The notes beneath the pieces were generated by a model. It was not told the DNA's origin. It did not search any database and was given only the letters and a program-made list of their open reading frames with translations. A stretch of 64,000 nucleotides of DNA. Source: Salpingoeca rosetta (taxonomy: Eukaryota; Protista; Choanoflagellata). A program made the position numbers and the translations under genes. The DNA lies in NCBI GenBank assembly GCA_033442325.1, contig JAWQFM010000005.1, positions 1,923,665-1,987,664 of the forward strand. The letters are read 5' to 3'. Below, in pieces: positions 3,301 to 18,200 of the stretch; within the stretch, counting starts at the first letter, position 1, and each line of letters opens with the position of its first letter.

Positions 3301-3720
3301 AAGCAAGCAAAGGGGCGGTGATCGTTGCTTGCATGCATGAGATGGTCGCCTGTTCACGGAGAGATGTGTTCGTGGAGAGATGTATCGACTGTGTTCACGG
3401 AGAGCAGCAGAACTTGCCATGTCCAGAGAGAACGAGAGAGACTTGAAAGGAGGGGCACAGCATGGACGATGCTCGTTGCTTGATTCCCCCCCCCAACAAA
3501 CAACATTCCATTTCCTTTCCTTTATTACCTTTCTTCCTTTCTGCGTGCATGACCACCACGTCTTCTCACCCATACGCACCCTCCCCCCCCCCTCTCTCTC
3601 TCTCTCGCTCGCATTTGGCAGGTGAAGGAAGAAGACAACCAAGCCTCGGCAACAAGGCGGGCGGACTGAAGCGCACGCACAGACACATACTGCGACTTTC
3701 CACACACAAGCAACACGGCA

Positions 3721-4465
3721 ATGCGGCTTGCGCTGATTGCGGTGCTGGCCCTGCTGGCAACCGCTGCCATCGCAAACGCTGAACTGAGTACGTGTGGCAT
3801 TGGGGAGAAAGAAGTGCTCTGAGGGAGAAGTGCGGTGCCCTGGTCCTCGTTTTGGATGCATGCCTCTGCCTGCATGCAGCTTGATGGTAGTGATGGTAGC
3901 CTTTGTCTTTGTTGAATCTGGTGCGCTGGTGCGGCGCTCGATATCTTTTCTTCTTTTGGTTTTTTCTTTCTTTGGTGACACGACATTTCCACCTCACACT
4001 CATTCGCACACACCACCACCACCACCACCACCACCAACAACAACAACGAAACAAAACCACACAGAGGGCGAGCGAGGCGACCCTGGCGAGCCTGGTGTCC
4101 CTGGCTGGGACGGTGCACAAGGCGACGGCGGTGACGGAGGCGACGGTGGCCTCAACGGTATCAACGGTGCAGATGGTCGCCCCGGCGATCGCGGTGACAA
4201 GGGTTTCGCAGGACGCGACGGCGAGAAGGGCGCACAGGGCGCTCCAGGTACGCAAACGTGTGTGTCGTGTGTCTAGTGACGTGGTTGTCAGCAGTGAAGG
4301 GAATGGTCTTGTTTGTGTTCACCTTTGTGCCGCGAGGAGCCATCCGCTCGCCTCCACGCCTACTCTTCTTTGTCATGCATCATGCCCAACGCGTCTCCTC
4401 ACACAACACAACACAACACAACACAACACAACACAACACAACACAACACAACACAACACAACACA

Positions 4466-4498
<33 letters not shown>

Positions 4499-5976
4499 CA
4501 CACACGCACAATAATAGGGACCCCTGGTGAGCCTGGCGACCAAGGCCCTGCTGGGCCTCGCGGTCCTCAGGGTAACCCTGGTACAGATGGCGCTGATGGT
4601 GACAAGGGCTTCCGAGGCGAGTCTGGTCTCCCAGGCACGGACGGTCGCCCAGGCGAAGATGGCCTCCCTGGCGACAAGGGCTTCCGCGGCGCAGATGGCT
4701 TTGACGGTGGGTGTGTGGTGGGTGTGTGGCCTGCGCTCATGTGTCGTGTGTGCGTGTGCTTGTGCGCGCATGTTTGCGTGTGTATGTGTGTGCTTGTGTG
4801 CGCGTGTTTACGTGTGTATGTATGTGTGTGTGTGTGCTTTTGTGCGCGCGCGCTTATTTGTTTCATCATTGTGTGTTTTGTGCGCGTGTGCCAAGTTGAT
4901 GATGGTGTTGCTTCGAAGCCTCCCCCCTAAAACTTGTTTATTTGTGTACTTGTATAACCCCCCCCCCCTTTTCGTGTGATGATGATGATGCTTGGGTGAC
5001 CCACCCTCCTTTGTCTTGCCTACTGTACTCACCACAACTGCAACCACGCTCTTTGCGCATGTCTACGCGCGTGTGTGCATGGCTTGTGTGCACAACAGGC
5101 ACGGTCGGCGTGAACGGACGCCCTGGTGACGACGGCGCAAAGGGTGCCAAGGGTGAGCAAGGCACACCAGGCTCCCGCGGCGCCACGGGCCCTGCGGGGT
5201 CTGATGGACGCCCTGGCGAGGACGGTCTGAACGGTGCCAAGGGTCAGGCTGGTGATGCCGGCTCCCGTGGTCCTCAAGGTGACAAGGGCCGCCGTGGTGC
5301 AGAGGGCCCTCGCGGTACCCCAGGTGCGTATCCGATGTTGATTGCCGACGTGTTGTGTTTGCCGTGTTTGATCTGATGTGTGTGCGTGTGTGCGTGTGTA
5401 TGCTTGTGTTTGCGTCTGTGTGTGCGTGTGTATGCTTGTGTGTGTGCGTGTGTGTGTGCGCGCGCGTCTGCGTGTGTATGTGTGTGTGTAACGTGGCAGT
5501 TGATGTGCGTCTGCGTGCATGTCATTGTATGTGACACCGTGGTTGGTGTGCGTGTTGCGACCTCGTGTACCTGATGCACGCCTTCCGTTCGCATTGCGCA
5601 AACATCTTTTTCGTTTTGCATCCCTCCACACTCGCCTCACACACTTGCCTTGCACACGCACACGCAATTGTACATGTTCAGGTGTCGATGGTACGCCTGG
5701 TGAGGATGGTATTCAAGGTCCCACAGGTTTCAACGGCCCCGCTGGTCCCAAGGGTCAGCGCGGCAACACTGGCATCCCTGGTAAGTGGCGCTGCATGTGC
5801 GCGCATGTGTGCGTGTGTGTGCAGTTGATAATCATTGGGCGCAGCGTGTATCATTGTCGGGTTTGATTTGTCCACCGATGAAGCGGTGACATTCAGCGAC
5901 GGGAAGTATTTTTTGCCCATGCGCTCGTTTTTATGTGTCGCTTTCTCTCACGACAACCAACAACAACCAACAACAA

Positions 5977-6041
<65 letters not shown>

Positions 6042-6657
6042 AATGACTGGCGGTTGCTTGTGTGTGCTGTACAGGTCGTGACGGAACCCCAGGAACTCCC
6101 GGTCGCAAGGGCCAGCGCGGGCCTGAGGGACCTGCTGGGCCCTCGGGTTTGGCTGGGCCCAAGGGTTTCCGTGGCACTGACGGCGTTGATGGCAGTCGCG
6201 GTGACCCAGGTCCCGCAGGCGAGGACGGTCTCAACGGTACCCCTGGTACCCCAGGCTCCCCAGGCACCCGAGGTATGTCTTCTGGGCGTATGTATGGATG
6301 TGTGGGTTTGTGCGTGCGTGCGTGTATGCACGTGCCGTTGCAGTGGTTCCTTTGATATTTCTGTTTTCTGTCACACGTTGCGCCTTTATGCATTGTCGTC
6401 TTTTTACACGCATGCCTTCACGTCGCGGACGTCATCATTGACATGACCTCACCTTCATGTGCAAAATCCCCCCCCCCTCTTAATTCTTTTGCAATGTCAC
6501 ACGTTGATTGTTGTGCACAGGTGACCCTGGTGATGCTGGTCCTCGTGGTAGCCCCGGTCTGGACGGGTGAGTTGAATGCAGATGCAGACATCGTCATGCA
6601 GACGCACGCACCCACTTGCACATTCTGCACATACATTTCCACACACACACACACACG

Positions 6658-6690
<33 letters not shown>

Positions 6691-9600
6691 GACACTCTTC
6701 CATCAACTACCTCGCTCTCGATTTACTCGCGGCTTTGTTAATCAACCGACGCAACGATAACGCACGGCTTTCGTCTGTTCTGCTTGCTTCTTCTTCCCTT
6801 CGTTGTGCAGTACGGACGGAGCTCGCGGTGACGCCGGTACACCCGGGCCCAAGGGTCTCAAGGGTCTTCGCGGTGTGGACGCTGCTGCTCGTGGTGCCCC
6901 TGGCCCACGTGGTGACAAGGGTCAGCGTGGTGAGCCAGGTCCCCCTGGTATCACTGGTGACAAGGGTTTCCAAGGCGAACCAGGCTTTGACGGTGCGTTT
7001 GTTGAAATTGTAAAAGAGGGTGTTATGTTGAAGTTGTTGTTGTTGGTGTTGTTTAAGTTGTTGTTGTTTAAGTTGTTGTTGTTGCTGTTGCTGTTGCTGT
7101 TGCTGTTGCGTTTGCGTTTGCGTTTGTGCTTGCGTTTGTGCTTGTACTTCGTGAACGTTTGCGACTGTTGTGTGATGTCCTCCTTGCTCGCATTCACACA
7201 CACACACACTCACTCGCACAATCAAACACACACACACACTCTCGTACACTCACTCACACACACTCACACACGTTTACAGGCACGGATGGTGCAAAGGGTC
7301 TTCGTGGGCCCCGAGGTGCTCCTGGCAACCCTGGTGTCGATGGTACAAATGGTGTGCCAGGGCCCCGTGGTGTGAAGGGCGAAGCTGGTGTCCCAGGTAC
7401 CCCTGGCCGCGACGGAGAGCAAGGTCTCAAGGGTGTGACAGGTCCCGCTGGGCCCAAAGGTTTCCGCGGTGTCTCTGGTGCTGATGGTGCTGATGGTGCC
7501 CCTGGTGACGTTGGCGAGCCTGGCTTGAACGGGACCCCAGGCACCCCAGGCCGCAACGGTGAAGACGGTCTTCGTGGCCCCAAGGGTGACACTGGTACGT
7601 TATTGTGGTTTCGCATACTGCGTGCGCTTACCTGCGTGTGCGTGAACATGCGTGCGCTTGCATCCTTGCGCTTGTTGTTTGCTGTTGTAAGTTTGCGGCG
7701 CTCTCGCCTGTCTTGCTGCTACGATTGGTTGCTATTACTGCTTCCGATCACAAACACGCAAACAAAACAACACGGTATTCACGTCCTCTCCCTCGCGCCT
7801 TTGTCACTCACGCCAATGCATCACCAAATGATGTTTTTTTTTTGTACTGCATTTCTTCACTTCAACCACAAACAGGTGCACAGGGTCCCCAAGGTGCCTC
7901 TGGCTTGGACGGTGCTCCTGGCCCCGACGGTATCCCCGGTAGCCCTGGCGACAAGGTGTGTACATTGCCTTGCTGCGTGTGTAGTTGCGCATTTTGTGTG
8001 TGGTTGTATCGTCGTGTTTTCGAGGAGTTGTATGTTTGTGTAGTTGTTCGAGTGTGTGTGCGTGTCGCATTTTTTTTTTGTGTGTGTGTGTTCGTGAAAC
8101 GAATGGATCATCCACCCACCAACGAACAAACGCCGGCACGCGCACACGTTCACGTACACGCACACGCACACGTTCACATACACACGCGCGCACTCGTTTA
8201 CTCATTGACACAATCATTTCTTTTCCTCAACAACAACAACTACTTTAACAACAGGGTGCACTTGGTGATACTGGTCCACGCGGTGCCCCAGGTGACCAGG
8301 GTCCAGCTGGCCCCCAGGGTCCGGCTGGTGAGCCTGGCCGTGACGGTCTGAAGGGTGAGCACGGTGACGCTGGTGCCCCTGGCGAAGACGGTGTTCAAGG
8401 CCCCGATGGTGATGCAGGCTTCACTGGCAGCGACGGACCCCGCGGCACTACTGGTGACGCAGGCATTCCAGGCACGGACGGAACCCCAGGTCGCAAGGGC
8501 CAGCGTGGTTCTCAAGGCGCCCGTGGTCCACAAGGTGCGTCGTTTGCCTGTTGTTGTTGTTGTTGTTTAGGTTGTTGTTGTCTCTGTTGTTGTTGTTTAA
8601 GTTGTTGTTGTTGTCTCTGTTGTTGTTGTTGTTTAAGTTGTTTCAGTTGTTGTTGCTTGTTGTTGTTGTTGTTGTTGTCTCTGTTGTTGTTGTTTAAGTT
8701 GTTTCAGTTGTTGTCTCTGTTGTTGTTGTTTAAGTTGTTTCAGTTGTTGTCTCTGTTGTTGTTGTTTAAGTTGTTTCAGTTGTTGTTGTTGTAACAATGA
8801 TGTATCAGGTTATGTCCTCCCCACTTCACACGTTGTGTCCTGCGCATCAAACCCATTTTACCATCACCAACTTTGCTCATCCCCCCCCCCAAACCCTCCA
8901 CGCCCCCCCCCCAAACTCTCACACACGATCGCCACACTGCAGGCTTCACTGGTGCGAATGGGCCTCGAGGCTTTGATGGTACGGACGGTGTCCCTGGTCG
9001 CAAGGGTCAACGCGGAACCTCAGGTGCCCCTGGCGTGAAGGGTGAGCGTGGCCCCGCTGGGCGCGATGGTACGGACGGTCGCCCTGGTGAGGATGGTTTG
9101 GATGGTGCTGATGGTGCCCCTGGCCCTCGTGGCTTCCCTGGGCCGAGTGGTCCAAAGGGTTTCCGCGGTACTGATGGTACCCAAGGCGACAAGGTGCGTG
9201 CTGTGCTGCTTGCGCGAGCTTTGTCTGCTTGACTAGGTGCAACTTGAGTGCTTGTGTTCGTGTGGTTGTTTGATGTTCGTTGCACGTTGTCTGCTTGATC
9301 GTTTGTTGGGTTGTTTGGTTGGTTGGTTGGTTGGTTGGTTGGTTGGTTGGTTGGTTGCTTTTCGTTCGTTCAGTGGTCGTTTTGATGTTTTGTCGTTTAC
9401 TGTTTTTGCATGCGTGTTGTCAACGTTTGACTTACCATGCGCAACTCACACATTGCTTTCTTTGCGTGTTGCGCAGGGCTTCCGCGGTGACGCTGGTCGC
9501 GACGGTACTCCAGGTGTGTTTGCACAACCCATTTCAATGTCTTTATGTTGCGTGATGCAACTCGTTTGCCGATCGGCACCACCCACCTCCAGCGCTCGTT

Positions 9601-10347
9601 TCTCCCTCAGTCGTTCGGTTGCAACCCTCCCCACACAACACGGTTTTTTTTCGTTCAAACTACCAATCTCACTCACCGCTTCACCACCATGCTATGCTGC
9701 TTGTATTGCGTTAGGTACCCCTGGTACTCCTGGCGAGGACGGCTTGTCTGGCCCTCGTGGGCCCCAAGGCCCGCGTGGTCTCAAGGGTCGCGCTGGTACC
9801 CCTGGTGAGTTGTCACACGCACGTACAAGAGAGAGAGAGAGAGAGAGAGAGTATGTGTGTGCGTGCGGTGTGTGTGTGTGTGTGTGCGGTGTGCGGTGTG
9901 CGGTGTGGTGTATGTGGCGTGTGTGTGAGTGTGTGTGTGTGCGGTGTGCGGTGTGCGGTGTGGTATGATTCACATTGCCATGCTATGTCATGTGTTGCAC
10001 TCGCTGTGCTCTCGCGCTCACTCACATACACGCACACATCACTTCCCTACTACCCCTCCTCTTCACGCCTTCTCCCCACCCCTCTTCCTTGCCTTACACG
10101 CGCAGGTACAATTGCTGAGGATGGTAACCCAGGTAACCCGGGAACACAGGGCCCTGCCGGTCCCCAAGGTCCTGGTGGTGATGCTGGTCCCAAGGGTCTG
10201 CAAGGTCCCCGCGGTCTTCCGGTACGTGTAAACGCGCGCACATGCTTCTTGTGCATGTTTAAGTTGTTGTTGTTGTTGTTTAAGTTGTTTAAGTTGTTGT
10301 TGTTGTTTAAGTTGTTGTTGTTGTTGTTTAAGTTGTTGTTGTTTAAG

Positions 10348-10390
<43 letters not shown>

Positions 10391-10894
10391 AGTTGTTGTT
10401 GCTGTTGCTGTTGCTGTTGTTGTTACCTTGTGTCGTGTGCTGATTGTTTTGTATTATGTTTGGTGTCGTGGTGGCTTGCGCCAACTCGCCATCACTCGCA
10501 CCACCGTAGTGGTCGTTGTCAGTTCACCTGCACTGTCGTTGTTTACATGCTGTCGCCATTGCACGCAATCAACATACACACATGCACACTTTGCGCCGAC
10601 ATCTTCTCACCCACTGACTTCTGTCTGTCCGCTCGTGATACGTGCCTATTCACTCTCCTCTCATTCTACAGGGCGAGAAAGGTCGCGTCGGTATCCCTGG
10701 TACCCCCGGTACACCAGGTACGGACACAGCCCATCGTTCATGATGTGCACTGCCCTCATCATGCGTCTGTATGTTAATTTTTCTCCACCTTCCCACTGCC
10801 ATTGCGCCACCGCCAACAAGCACCTCCCCCCGGCTCTTTCTTGTTGTCGCTCCTTCTCTCAAACACCCCCTTGTCACTCCTTCTTACGATTACC

Positions 10895-10941
<47 letters not shown>

Positions 10942-11363
10942 TCTCCTCTTCTCGTCATGGCATTTTGTCTCGATGAAGGTACCCCCGGTGACAAGGGCCA
11001 GCGCGGCGACGCCGGTTCCCCTGGTACTCCTGGTTCCCCTGGTGAGGATGGCTTGGATGGAAGCCCAGGCCCTCGCGGTATCCCTGGTGTTGATGGCGAC
11101 GATGGTGTGCCTGGCCCCAAGGGTCGCGCTGGTACCCCTGGTCTTGACGGAGCTCGCGGTGATCCAGGTACGGCACTTGTTGCATGTCCAACGTCGTTGT
11201 TGTTGTTTTATGTTGTTGTTGTTGTGCGTGTGCGTGTGTCGTGCTGCGTAGTGTCGTGTCGTGTTGTGGCGTGATTGCGCATGTTAACATGTTTGTACTC
11301 AACAACTCGTGCTCTTGAATTTTATTCTTTCAAACATTCGCGCTGATTGTGCGCTCACACATC

Positions 11364-11404
<41 letters not shown>

Positions 11405-12259
11405 CACATCAACACACACATCACATCAACACACACATCACACACACATCACACACAGGTCCCCAGGGTCCTGCTGGTGCCGATGCCGAGGATGGTTTGC
11501 CCGGCCCTGGTGGCGAGAACGGTGACGCCGGTGACCGCGGCTTCAAGGGCTTCCGTGGCGACCCTGGCCCACGCGGCGCAGATGCTGGCGATGGTGCACG
11601 CGGCTCAGACGGCCACCACGGTCTCAAGGGCGACAAGGGCAACACTGGTCCCACTGGTGTGAAGGGTCAGCCCGGTACGGACGGTGTCGATGGCGCTGAT
11701 GGCAGCCCAGGTGCCAAGGGCCAACCAGGCTTTGATGGTACGGATGGCCTCAAGGGCATGCGCGGTTACGTTGGTGACAGCATCCCGGGACCTAGTGGTG
11801 CCATTGGTGACAAGGGCCAGCGCGGCGACGGCGGTGACGGCGGCATCAAGGGTAACGTTGGTCTTCCTGGCTCTGCCGAGGCCATCCGCGCCTTTGAGAC
11901 AGACGCCGATTGGCGCGCGTTCAAGACCGAGTACGACGCTGCGGTTGCCAGCTTTGACAACTACGACGGCTCTTGCGACGATGTCATGGATGACTTTGAG
12001 ACTGCCCGCCAGGACGCCCGCGATCTCTACGACACCATGGAGGAGTTCTTCAGCAACATTGACCGTGCAGCGAGCGACGCGCAAACCGATATCCAAAACG
12101 CCCTCAACCAGTACGAGGCAGAGTGCGAAGAGCTTCGCGTCGAGACATACGCAACAGTTCAGGTTCGTCTTTGTGCATTTTGCGTCTGTGTGTATGTGCG
12201 CGCGCGCGTGTGCGCGTGTGCGCCTGTGTGTCTTTGGCGTTGCGTGTGTGTGTGTATGT

Positions 12260-12301
<42 letters not shown>

Positions 12302-12526
12302 ATGCAAGCATGTGTGGGGGGGGGGTGCGGCCATTTTCCATTTTGCCATTCTCCAGTCTTGTCTCTGTCTCTTCGCTTTTGTGCCTTTCCTCCTCGCCAT
12401 TTCTTCCTCACGCCCAATCTCCCTTCCTTCCTCCCCTCTCCCTTCTCTCTCCACCGCCATCTTCTGCAGGAAATGATTTCGGCCCTGCGCAACTGGGTCA
12501 ACTACTACACAGACGGCAGCGACTAA
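3721..12526 (+). CDS. Secreted collagen: signal peptide, about 981-aa Gly-X-Y domain, 113-aa helical C-terminal domain (about 1117 aa, 19 exons)
   Basis: Phase-consistent GT-AG exons: 3721-3787, 4065-4247, 4518-4706, 5099-5323, 5682-5780, 6075-6272, 6521-6566, 6811-6992, 7280-7594, 7876-7955, 8255-8534, 8943-9193, 9477-9513, 9715-9804, 10106-10221, 10672-10717, 10979-11167, 11459-12162, 12470-12526. They sum to 3354 nt. N-terminus [29 protein letters not shown]; the triplet register is kept across every junction. Confidence 0.93.
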
Positions 12527-15254: not shown

Positions 15255-18200
15255 GTACAACACACACACACACACACGTACAAAACAGCACGCGTACACA
15301 ACACAACACAACACAACACAGACACGCACCGAAGGACTTCGCGGTTGGCGTGAATGTAGTCGAGAAGGGCCATCTGCGTCTGGCGAGGGGCAAACTGCAT
15401 GAGCGTCTGGATGACATAGTTTGCGTACTTGTCCTTCATCATGATGTGCAGTGGAGCAGCCGTGGTTCCGTCCGGCAGCGCAGTGCTGCGGCACAACTCG
15501 GCCACGAGCGAGGAAATCTGGTCCGCACGCGCAACGCGCAGAAACTTCTCAATCACGTTGCTGGCAAACTTGTGCTGGCTGAGCGTGAGGAGGTTGCCGG
15601 AGACGCAGTCCATGACCACGTCGCGGTGCTCCTGCTTGCCATGCTCGAGCACGTGCTGAATGACGTAGTTGCCGTACGCGTTCTTCATGAGGGAGGCACA
15701 GTCGTCAAGCACATTCTTGTACACAAGAGCCAGCTGCGTCGACTCGCACTGTTCAATCAGGCGCTGAATCACGCGGCAGCCGTACAGGTGGCGGGACATG
15801 GCCGAGGCCTGCCACAAGACACCACATCACATTCGCAGCAATTGCACGCAACGTGCACATGATGCGTTTGTCGAACAATGGGGCCGGTGGGCGGAAGTGT
15901 GAGCGAGTGGGCGCGACAAGAGCATCAAACCAGATGTGCAGTGGAAAGAGATGCGCACACGCATACACACCATCACAGACGAGCAGATGCACACGCGCGC
16001 ACGCACGCACACGCATACACATACACACACACCTGGCGCTCGCAGGCGGAGATGACAAAGCCGAGGTTGTCTGGGGAAAGCGAGGTGACGCACTTCTGAA
16101 TGACATGGTTGGCATGCTGATCCATGATGAGATCGCTCACATTGTATGCCTCCAGCTCCTTGAGAACAATGTTGCGCAGCTCGGCAGAGGTGACGGTGGC
16201 AAGGACCTCCTGCACAACACGGCAGCCGTAGTTGTGCATGGAAAGTGCCGGCACGCGGCCGCGCATGCCGTTGACAATGGCGTGCTGCACGGTGCCATCG
16301 CCATACTGCAGCAGCTTCTGGATGACGTAGTTGCCAAAGACGTCAGTCATGACTTGGTACAGCTGCTCGCCAACCTCCTCCAGCAGCTTGTGCATTTCTG
16401 CCGGCGTGGCAGACTCGATGCAGTGCTGAATCATGCGTGAACCGTGCTGGTCCGCCGACAGCTCGACAATGCGGCCCGCGAGGTCCCGCAGCCGCGTGCT
16501 GCTGTCGAGGTTGAGGCGACGGAAGGTGTTCTGCAGGCCGTTGTTGCCGCGCCGCGGCGTGCCGCGTTCGGCGCTGTTGCGGCTGCTTGATGGGCGACGC
16601 CGGCCATCCCTGTTGTTGTCGTGGGCGTTGGCGGTGTTGACGTTGTTGTTGCGTGGTTGGTCGGGTACGGCCGGGGGTTGCGCATGAAAGGCGTGCGGAT
16701 GATGCGCCACAGCGTGTTGGGGATGCAAGGGTATTTGCAGGTGCGAAACGGCAGCATGGCCATGATGCGGGTGCACATGCGAATGATGGGGAGGAAGTGG
16801 TGCGGGTGCGCCGGGGTGGTATTGTTGTTGGTATTGGGGATGATATGGTTGTTGATGATAAGGTTGTTGTTGGTGTGGTTGTGATTGTTGCACGAGTTGG
16901 TGCGGTTGGTGGTGTTGCACAAGTTGGTGTGGTTGTGATTGTTGTTGCATGGGTGCATGGGAAGCGCGGGGATTGTATTCCGGATAGGGGTTGTGCGCGA
17001 GGTGGGGTGATGGTGCGGAGTGCGGGTGTTGAGGTTGCGGGAATTGTGGCGGGACGTGGTGGAGTGCGGCCGTTCCAGACGTCGTTGACACGATATGGTG
17101 GTGGTTGTGGGGTGGTGCGTGGGGATGGGGCGCGTATGCAAGCGGGAGCGACGACGGAGGCGGAGGAGGTGGTGCGTGTGATGGTGGTGTCACAGAAGCA
17201 TAGGCAGACTGGTGAGTCGACATGGTTGTTGTCAGAGAAAAGCAAGACGGGAGAGCCAGCGTGTCAGGTCTTCGACAAAAGGAACGAGGAGGAAGAGAAG
17301 TGTGTGGCAATGTGTGCTGATGATGACACGAAGACACAACTGCGCCCAAAGCGAAAAATTAATTATCGTGGCGAGCGCGCCAATGCCAGTGTGTGACGTC
17401 AAGTGATGTGATGTAAAAGAAACGAGGGAGAGACAAGCGAGAAGACGAGTGAAAGCACAGAGGCCGCCCCAAGAGAAGACGGGTGGATGATTTGGCGACT
17501 CCAAAAACACGAACGAAGGAAACGGAAGCAATGGGGGAAAGAGAGACAAGCAGCGATGCAAGAGCATTGAAAATTAGTGCGGCACACATGCAGGGCCAGC
17601 AAGGGTGGAAACTCCACATTAAATTCCATCGTACCTGTCATGACTGAATTCAGTCGACGGTGAGGCCAATGGCGCGCCCGCAAACATGAAGGCGGACGGT
17701 GGATGGTGGGGATGACCGTGATGATGGAGGTGGTGGTGATGAGCGTGGTGCGGGTGCGGGTGCGCGTGGAACGGTGGGGCATGCCCATGCGGCTCCTCCA
17801 TCAGCGGGCCAGGGGTGTGGGGCAGGAAAGAGTGGGGGGTGTGAGGGGCAGTTGCAGGGCCGGGCGCGTGAAAGTGCATGCCTGGGGCCGGCTCGCTGTG
17901 GGCGCGTGCATAGCGATGGTTCGGCGGGGGCACCATGCCTGGCTGCATATGATGAAGGTGCTGCTGGTGGGGATGGTGGTGGGGGTGGCCGAGATGGAGG
18001 GCTTGATGATGTGGGTGCTGGGGTTGGAACGAAGCACCCATAACATGCTGCTGGGGTGGGGGTATGCCCTGCTGCTGTGGCGGTTTTTGCTCCTGCCGCT
18101 GTTGGGCAGGGTCATGCCGCTGCTGCTGTTGTTGCTGCTCCTGCTGCTGAGAAGAAGGGGGGTTGGCAGGCAGCCAGTCCTGGGACCCGGGCGCAAGCAT

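Follow-up and report, generated by a model that had tools for sequence, protein, structure and literature searches.

A 64,000-nucleotide stretch of the genome of the choanoflagellate Salpingoeca rosetta (assembly GCA_033442325.1, contig JAWQFM010000005.1, positions 1,923,665 to 1,987,664 of the forward strand), hereafter called the window, carries a split collagen gene at 3721-12526 on its plus strand. There is little doubt that this is a real, expressed and conserved gene for a long secreted collagen that ends in a conserved C-terminal tail domain. Fibrillar collagen is regarded as an animal invention, and here a close relative of animals was found to make abundant mRNA for a predicted secreted rod that equals it in length and near-continuity. 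In place of the COLFI domain of animal fibrillar collagens, the window collagen has a different, conserved C-terminal module. Taken as a whole, the product is probably a homotrimeric structural rod that is secreted and nucleated at its C-terminus, in parallel to animal fibrillar collagen. The gene thereby separates two questions which are usually merged, namely the origin of long continuous triple helices and the origin of COLFI-driven fibril assembly.

The gene model was obtained by listing all GT/GC..AG pairs that leave frame and triplet register intact. Of the donors available at a junction, the one chosen was the last to precede decay of the Gly-X-Y pattern. This resulted in 19 GT-AG exons with a coding sequence of 3354 nt, encoding 1117 aa and ending with the stop codon at 12526. 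The donors are all of the GT(A/G/T)(C/A/G/T)G type and the acceptors are all (C/T/A)AG. The 20 uninterrupted Gly-X-Y blocks (15-108 aa each) are confined to the plus strand from 4067 to 11877; elsewhere in the 64 kb, only chance runs of 12 residues occur. A preliminary description of this DNA, made by manual splicing, had also arrived at 19 exons, and the splice-site model agrees with it to the residue.

The encoded protein consists of a predicted signal peptide (M1-A20, ending ..AIANA), the three residues ELK, a Gly-X-Y domain at residues 24-1003, and a 114-aa tail at residues 1004-1117. Walking through the triplets, the Gly-X-Y domain was found to measure 980 aa with 322 true triplets and five small imperfections, which are GVD-AAAR-G at residue 360, GTI-AED-G at 751, GAD-AED-G at 874, GAD-AGD-G at 907, and GDS-IP-G at 973. 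The longest perfect runs between them span 112 and 129 triplets. The preliminary description had given a 20-aa signal peptide, three residues, about 981 aa of Gly-X-Y with about 322 triplets, and exactly these five imperfections, so that its picture of a secreted, near-continuous helix of fibrillar length in an organism other than an animal is borne out. The Pfam Collagen family (PF01391) matches exon 9 with an E-value of 1.8e-19 and exon 18 with 4.3e-17. Since Pfam returns only Collagen on the chain, the reported absence of an N-propeptide, COLFI, and a C4 (NC1) domain also holds; moreover, no KGH motif was found in the chain and no transmembrane segment. Of the X positions 16.5% are proline, and of the Y positions 23.9%; about 24% of the residues are charged. 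At 0.286 nm per residue, the 980 aa correspond to a predicted rod of about 280 nm. What the earlier description left out of its summary is the conserved helical domain at the C-terminus, and its notion of a bare rod has to be given up.

The tail is acidic and is composed of a short helix, an invariant DG(S/T)CD turn, and a long amphipathic helix. With the last 97 residues of exon 18 as query, Pfam gave nothing above cut-off, only weak matches of the coiled-coil type, and a feature search of the ESM Atlas with the tail gave no usable match. When the exon 18 piece of the tail was run exhaustively with HMMER against 1.84 billion representative proteins, nine matches were obtained, all of them environmental proteins. 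Among the listed proteins, the domain directly follows Gly-X-Y in P0001, P0002, P0007, and P0008. Three others (P0003, P0009, and P0005, the last a fragment) contain the domain only, although P0009 has a collagen context through its contig, L003. The remaining two, P0004 and P0006, are long repetitive coiled-coil proteins and were discounted as relatives. In the 55.4-Mb S. rosetta genome, a search for paralogs of the tail domain found only the gene itself. The family alignment (A1) contains an invariant G-x-C-D and conserved aromatic positions.

An AlphaFold2 (AF2) model of the ortholog tail, built from a shallow alignment, has helices at positions 10-28 and 35-114 with a turn at the Cys motif. 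Its mean predicted local distance difference test score (pLDDT) is 86, and its predicted template modelling score (pTM) of 0.44 is what an elongated shape would be expected to give. Along the long helix, the column-averaged hydrophobicity has a strong period of 3.55-3.65 residues and, taken over the whole length, almost no power at exactly 3.5. On these grounds, a hendecad-like or stutter-rich, nearly straight bundle would fit the long helix better than a classical heptad coiled coil. A lone helix of 80 residues is not stable as a monomer, therefore the model suggests that the tail oligomerises.

The tail defines a family with the following signature: Gly-X-Y directly followed by W..F..(Y/F)D.(F/Y)DG(S/T)CD, a long amphipathic helix, and a terminal ..QE.I..L.N.V.YY. 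The window gene carries this signature in alignments A1 and A2. The other members are L003 (with P0009), L002 (with P0002 and L008), L015 (with P0001), L009 and L016 (with P0007), P0008, P0003, P0005, and P0022. L003 is a 4012-nt contig found in five Joint Genome Institute (JGI) samples; it contains one intron-free open reading frame (ORF) of 1121 aa and is presumed to be an mRNA. Its protein has a signal peptide (..AVSASA), the residues DLK, a Gly-X-Y domain of 979 aa, and the same tail as the S. rosetta protein. The helix is thus of nearly the same length in the two full-length members, 980 and 979 aa. In a global alignment, the two proteins are 52% identical (35% outside Gly), and the gaps in the helix are only multiples of three. 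The N-terminal 40 residues are strongly conserved between them. A ten-residue motif at residues 44-53 (about 4125-4154) is identical in both full-length orthologs and could be an end-specific interaction or metal-binding site. A similar motif, GDGGDGG, was also observed in the S. rosetta helix close to its C-terminal end.

The closest relative, L015, comes from a marine metagenome (MDTD01070338.1) and was found by a metagenome scan with A2, which gave two loci. The S. rosetta and L015 chains are 58% identical overall and 42% identical outside the columns with Gly in both, and their tails share identical blocks of 12 and 14 residues. Judged from these alignments, conservation is clearly stronger in the tail than in the helix. 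S. rosetta and L015 share the site of their last intron (after ..ATVQ), with an almost identical sequence behind it, and in L003 and L002, which are intron-free, nothing interrupts the tail. When L015:3-2384 is compared with window positions 7280-12526, the 719 upstream codons of L015 are without an intron, whereas the window gene has eleven in that part. This looks as if introns had been gained at protosplice sites in one lineage, or lost on a massive scale in the relative. L002/L008 is a partial contig that is collinear with S. rosetta and bears a second gene on the opposite strand. L009/L016 (GC 63%) is related more distantly; its Gly-X-Y exceeds 900 aa and is broken more often.

Not only the length of the helix but also the position of its breaks is largely conserved. 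Four of the five breaks are common to S. rosetta and L003 at the same places. In the four-way alignment of S. rosetta, L015, L003, and L002, the Gly-replacing I(A/M)(E/P)DG break occupies the same columns in all four, as does the insertion of two residues (IP, VS, VE, or LP), and the AGDG break is found in three of them. Opposite the four-residue AAAR break, L003 has STLA and is the sole relative that reaches that position. The position of the ADAEDG break is not fixed.

Searches with the L003 protein required shared 5-residue words and used databases clustered at 50%, and absence from Monosiga or from animals does not follow from them. Within these limits, the search with words of the tail region found no full-length family members. 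The search with the whole length found only generic collagens from bacteria and vertebrates at up to 45% identity, with a Wolbachia protein first; the window's own protein was not listed.

Transcription of the gene was examined with RNA-derived sequences mapped over 3650-9649 (four runs from four studies). Exon 1 includes a 5′ untranslated region at 3578-3720, whose start at about 3578 is estimated from RNA contig arithmetic. Its coding part at 3721-3787 (ATG, 20-aa signal peptide, EL, and the first base of the K codon) ends at the donor GTACGT. The triple-helix domain begins with exons 2-6 (4065-4247, 4518-4706, 5099-5323, 5682-5780, and 6075-6272) and continues with exons 7-12 (6521-6566, 6811-6992, 7280-7594, 7876-7955, 8255-8534, and 8943-9193), all on the plus strand and taken from the gene model together with RNA contigs. 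Exons 2-12 lie contiguously, in record coordinates, on single RNA contigs (3835, 3670, and 4451 nt) that derive from three studies. The gene is thus transcribed as a single long plus-strand mRNA rather than as several short genes. The preliminary description had remarked that the ORF track shows only fragments and that automated models may miss the full protein; RNA assemblies appear to contain the gene whole.

The junctions within this region could be followed one by one. GT..AG joints are listed in the RNA contigs at 4705/5098, 5320/5679, 5779/6074, and 6270/6519, and further ones at 6565/6810, 7593/7875, 7953/8253, and 9191/9475. Junctions 4247/4518 and 8532/8941 were obtained from adjoining record positions in the contigs. 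Junction 6992/7280 comes from arithmetic only: exons 7 and 8 together are as long as the stretch of 229 record positions that separates exon 6 from exon 9. In contig X12, exon 2 starts at record position 211, which places 210 nt, 67 of them coding, before the first junction. This start, together with the depth match in bin 3650-3849 (in X4 and X12, 138/200 of the depth of the contig), implies the joint of exon 1 and exon 2 (3787/4065), which is located at a flagged repeat (4001-4059). In stranded raw RNA reads the first mate lies on the minus strand, as for a plus-strand mRNA in usual stranded libraries.

Downstream of exon 12 the model continues on the plus strand with exons 13-17 of the triple-helix domain (9477-9513, 9715-9804, 10106-10221, 10672-10717, and 10979-11167), which were placed by the model. 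The first part of exon 18 (11459-11874) encodes the last 139 aa of Gly-X-Y with the breaks GAD-AED, GAD-AGD, and GDS-IP. The remainder of the exon (11875-12162, donor GTTCGT) encodes the first 96 aa of the non-collagenous domain (AEAIRAF...ATVQ), and exon 19 (12470-12526) the last 18 aa and the stop codon. Sampled 31-mers of 6500-12500 were shared at 0.33-0.37 by many RNA-type runs labelled with the same organism, matching the 0.33 expected for exons 7-19 without introns. Past exon 12, contig X12 extends for 1579 nt against 1239 nt of modelled coding sequence, which leaves 340 nt for a plausible 3′ untranslated region. Together with the almost gap-free alignment to L015, L002, and L003, these values lend indirect support to exons 13-19.

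A few RNA joints do not follow the model. Those from 6120 to 9082 and, backwards, from 9515 to 6082 have sides of 24-39 nt and were read as misplaced short, similar collagen exons, not as isoforms. In introns 10 and 11 (8071-8096 and 8718-8775), RNA reads and small contigs were observed that join 8091 to 8718 or 8754. These joins have TC..TC ends, 21-nt sides, at most 21 reads, and foreign flanks, and one run is very deep at 8650-8849. Because these sites consist of (GTT)n-type simple repeats, other loci are the probable source of the reads.

Based on these data, the gene probably encodes the single alpha chain of a secreted collagen. Three identical chains would associate via the C-terminal domain, and a homotrimer is the simplest assumption because the tail domain occurs once in the genome. 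The long amphipathic helices, with a hydrophobic period put at 3.6-3.67 residues, would form a straight bundle or a coiled coil of hendecad type. The helical bundle would fix the chain register and nucleate zipper-like folding from the C- to the N-terminus. The product would be a triple helix of about 280 nm that serves as an extracellular structural filament. Proline in 24% of the Y positions, possibly hydroxylated, and about 24% charged residues would stabilise the helix, and the conserved micro-interruptions may act as fixed flexible or recognition points. Regarding the single parts of this proposal, trimerisation through the tail, as suggested by the model, is somewhat favoured, and a structural role in the matrix is held with similar, modest confidence. 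The preliminary description had suggested the theca, stalk, or rosette matrix as the place of the protein. A lead to the site of action comes from one preprint, in which expression of unnamed "collagen" genes, not tied to the window gene, falls from thecate cells to swimmers to colonies; through these genes, expression might be connected to the theca or attachment matrix. In the main text of Fairclough 2013, collagen is not mentioned. The genome also contains 12 matches to 2OG-FeII_Oxy_3, which is of the prolyl-hydroxylase type, and P4H domains are reported to be present in all choanoflagellates and universal in holozoans (Linden & King 2021, bioRxiv 10.1101/2021.10.08.463732).

Several observations weigh against the structural rod. 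The window gene is known here from DNA and RNA sequence alone, and its relatives only as environmental sequences. Proline was found in 20% of the X and Y positions together, compared with an animal median of 30%. A Foldseek search with the AF2 model of the tail against the PDB gave nothing at E ≤ 0.001, the matches being generic coiled coils with E-values of about 1 or worse. The tail has a single invariant Cys, and because only this one is invariant, a disulfide knot is uncertain. A complex prediction with three copies of the ortholog tail received a score of 0.02, with the partner's own fold uncertain, and counts neither way.

A different role was considered first among the alternatives, in which the protein is a soluble or cell-surface "defence collagen" that binds bacteria, prey, or substrate and is not a matrix scaffold. 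The order of a rod followed by a helical neck recalls collectins and class A scavenger receptors, and other choanoflagellate collagens are described as carrying SRCR or fibrinogen heads (bioRxiv 10.1101/2021.10.08.463732). The window chain, however, has no lectin, SRCR, fibrinogen, or other recognition head and ends at the helical domain, and it contains no transmembrane segment. A 280-nm helix is about 5-15 times longer than those of defence collagens. The protein contains 11 RGD motifs and its tail is very acidic, features that would suit binding; yet the RGD count is what the composition of the sequence would give, with Arg at Y and Asp at X. A defence collagen is thus considered unlikely.

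Alpha-helical modules that adjoin Gly-X-Y are also found in the collectin neck, class A scavenger receptors, the membrane collagens XIII and XVII, and the V-domain of streptococcal Scl proteins, and like these the tail of the window protein could set the chain register. In collagens trimerised by such coiled coils, the helix spans tens to about 200 triplets, and a functional head or a membrane anchor usually comes after the coil. In contrast, the helical domain of the window protein closes the chain, spans about 80 residues, shows a period close to 3.65 instead of 3.5, and has no detectable relative in sequence or fold. Bacterial Scl proteins are similar to the window protein in their charge-rich and proline-poor helix.

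The second alternative regards the gene as genuinely related to animal fibrillar collagen, or as a prototype of it that has survived. In that case a helix of about 1000 residues would be older than animals, COLFI would later have replaced the coiled-coil tail, and the rods would form staggered fibrils. Animal fibrillar procollagens (types I-III, V, XI, XXIV, and XXVII, as well as those of sponges and cnidarians) are likewise secreted with one near-unbroken Gly-X-Y domain of about 1000 residues, and their C-terminal non-collagenous domain is where chain association starts. The window protein, with a domain of trimerisation type in the same place, has this procollagen-like layout. Its helix of 980 aa comes close in length to the major helix of fibrillar collagen, which measures about 1014 residues (338 triplets) and is uninterrupted, but it has five tiny breaks; constancy of helix length among relatives is a further likeness, as in the 980 and 979 aa of the two full-length members. 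Choanoflagellates also carry COLFI on other proteins. Despite this, the window protein lacks not only the COLFI C-propeptide and the N-propeptide but also the minor helix, telopeptides, and KGH cross-link sites, and it differs by lower proline and an unrelated alpha-helical C-terminal module. The best database matches are generic Gly-X-Y proteins, the Wolbachia protein being the first.

The exon structure points in the same direction. In animal fibrillar genes, the helix exons are phase-0 units of 54 or 45 bp that begin with an intact Gly codon. In the window gene, 13 of the 17 helix introns are phase 1 and split the Gly codon after its first base (..CAG/GT), with one phase-2 and three phase-0 introns. 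The sizes of exons 2-17 (183, 189, 225, 99, 198, 46, 182, 315, 80, 280, 251, 37, 90, 116, 46, and 189 nt) do not have the 54/45-bp pattern. The ancestral exon-intron organisation of fibrillar genes is treated in a dedicated section of the review by Exposito et al. (PMC2852846).

Staggered packing was examined with a Hulmes-type stagger score compared with 1000 triplet shuffles. The fibrillar control chains were faulty gene models, leaving the scans without a clean positive control. The best D in S. rosetta was 230 with a family-wise P of 0.11, so that no D-period is significant after correction, and the best D of L003 (330, P 0.023) is not shared by S. rosetta. A weak stagger score at 221-224 residues in both orthologs (z about 2.1-2.8, or about 2.3-2.8 as counted in favour of a prototype) has no support at multiples. 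A search of the genome for lysyl oxidase gave no match and speaks weakly against fibrils, as the search control gave no match either. Kinship with animal fibrillar collagen is therefore improbable. As far as sequence comparison can tell, the window protein is not a fibrillar collagen and resembles one only in the length and continuity of its helix. The structural rod then represents a solution parallel to that of animal fibrillar collagen and stands outside the fibrillar family. Collagen IV and spongin have a C-terminal C4 (NC1) domain and a much-interrupted helix, in contrast to the five micro-breaks and the absence of a C4 match in the window protein.

Horizontal acquisition of a collagen-like gene from bacteria, or contamination with foreign DNA, is very improbable: the full-length match that ranks first for the ortholog belongs to Wolbachia (a collagen-repeat protein, 40% identity) and the low-proline, charge-rich helix is like that of bacterial collagens, but this similarity is compositional, the 18 spliceosomal GT-AG introns are confirmed or supported by RNA, the signal peptide is eukaryotic, GC content and CA-repeat introns are as in the surrounding genome, and no bacterial relative was found among the significant tail matches that carry Gly-X-Y.

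Choanoflagellates have been described as having triple-helix repeats and separate COLFI proteins without fibrillar collagen (PMC2852846; Linden & King 2021, bioRxiv 10.1101/2021.10.08.463732). According to the preprint, COLFI never occurs on a collagen-bearing chain in choanoflagellates, and their collagens rival animal ones in repeat length (Linden & King 2021). In the portions of it that were examined, neither the architecture of the window protein nor its tail domain is mentioned, the word "coiled" is absent, and "uninterrupted" is used once, for animal fibrillar collagen. The ChCL protein described there, with about 50 aa of collagen and a lectin domain, is unlike the window protein; VWA-collagens are described there as well. 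The general phenomenon of long choanoflagellate collagens was thus already known, and what appears to be new, as far as these portions extend, is the family, its conserved length and breaks, and its tail domain.

Several other collagen loci are present in the S. rosetta genome, the largest of which (C1:2334765-2345616, plus strand) encodes about 1950 aa of Gly-X-Y. Three VWA-like inserts and two helical domains interrupt the helix of this VWA-collagen, in contrast to the continuous helix of the window gene. The two helical domains are rich in Cys and Trp and were located at L014:793-1131 and 4711-5049 (the locus corresponds to L013:3544-10000 and L014:1-5049). Their motif W..(F/W)..DY..V..(N/D)GT aligns with the tail of the window gene. 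As homologues of the tail they were rejected, with hhalign E-values of 0.03 and 0.07 that are not significant, and the resemblance is one of motif only.

Since S. rosetta is genetically tractable, it offers a setting in which the function of a 280-nm collagen in a single cell can be addressed. The tail is a candidate for a new trimerisation module, which could serve recombinant collagens, and the conserved micro-interruptions are natural test cases for the tolerance of Gly-to-Ala sites. [quoted passage not shown] Fibrillar collagen would then have arisen by a swap of the tail for COLFI, and the theca or colony matrix could contain ordered fibrils. We regard this as a long shot.

The neighbouring genes gave no hint to the function of the collagen. 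The gene next to the collagen in L002 (L002:2780-6625, minus strand) encodes 1281 aa without a Pfam domain. Its only match in the S. rosetta genome was found at C5:1895439-1898141 (minus strand; 27% identity, E 2.7e-8), about 30 kb upstream of the collagen. This would amount to a weak indication that the linkage of collagen and neighbour is conserved between L002 and S. rosetta. Downstream of the collagen, the first gene that can be recognised is an ORF on the minus strand at 15973-17346, which contains four Pumilio (PUF) RNA-binding repeats (Pfam E 2.2e-34).

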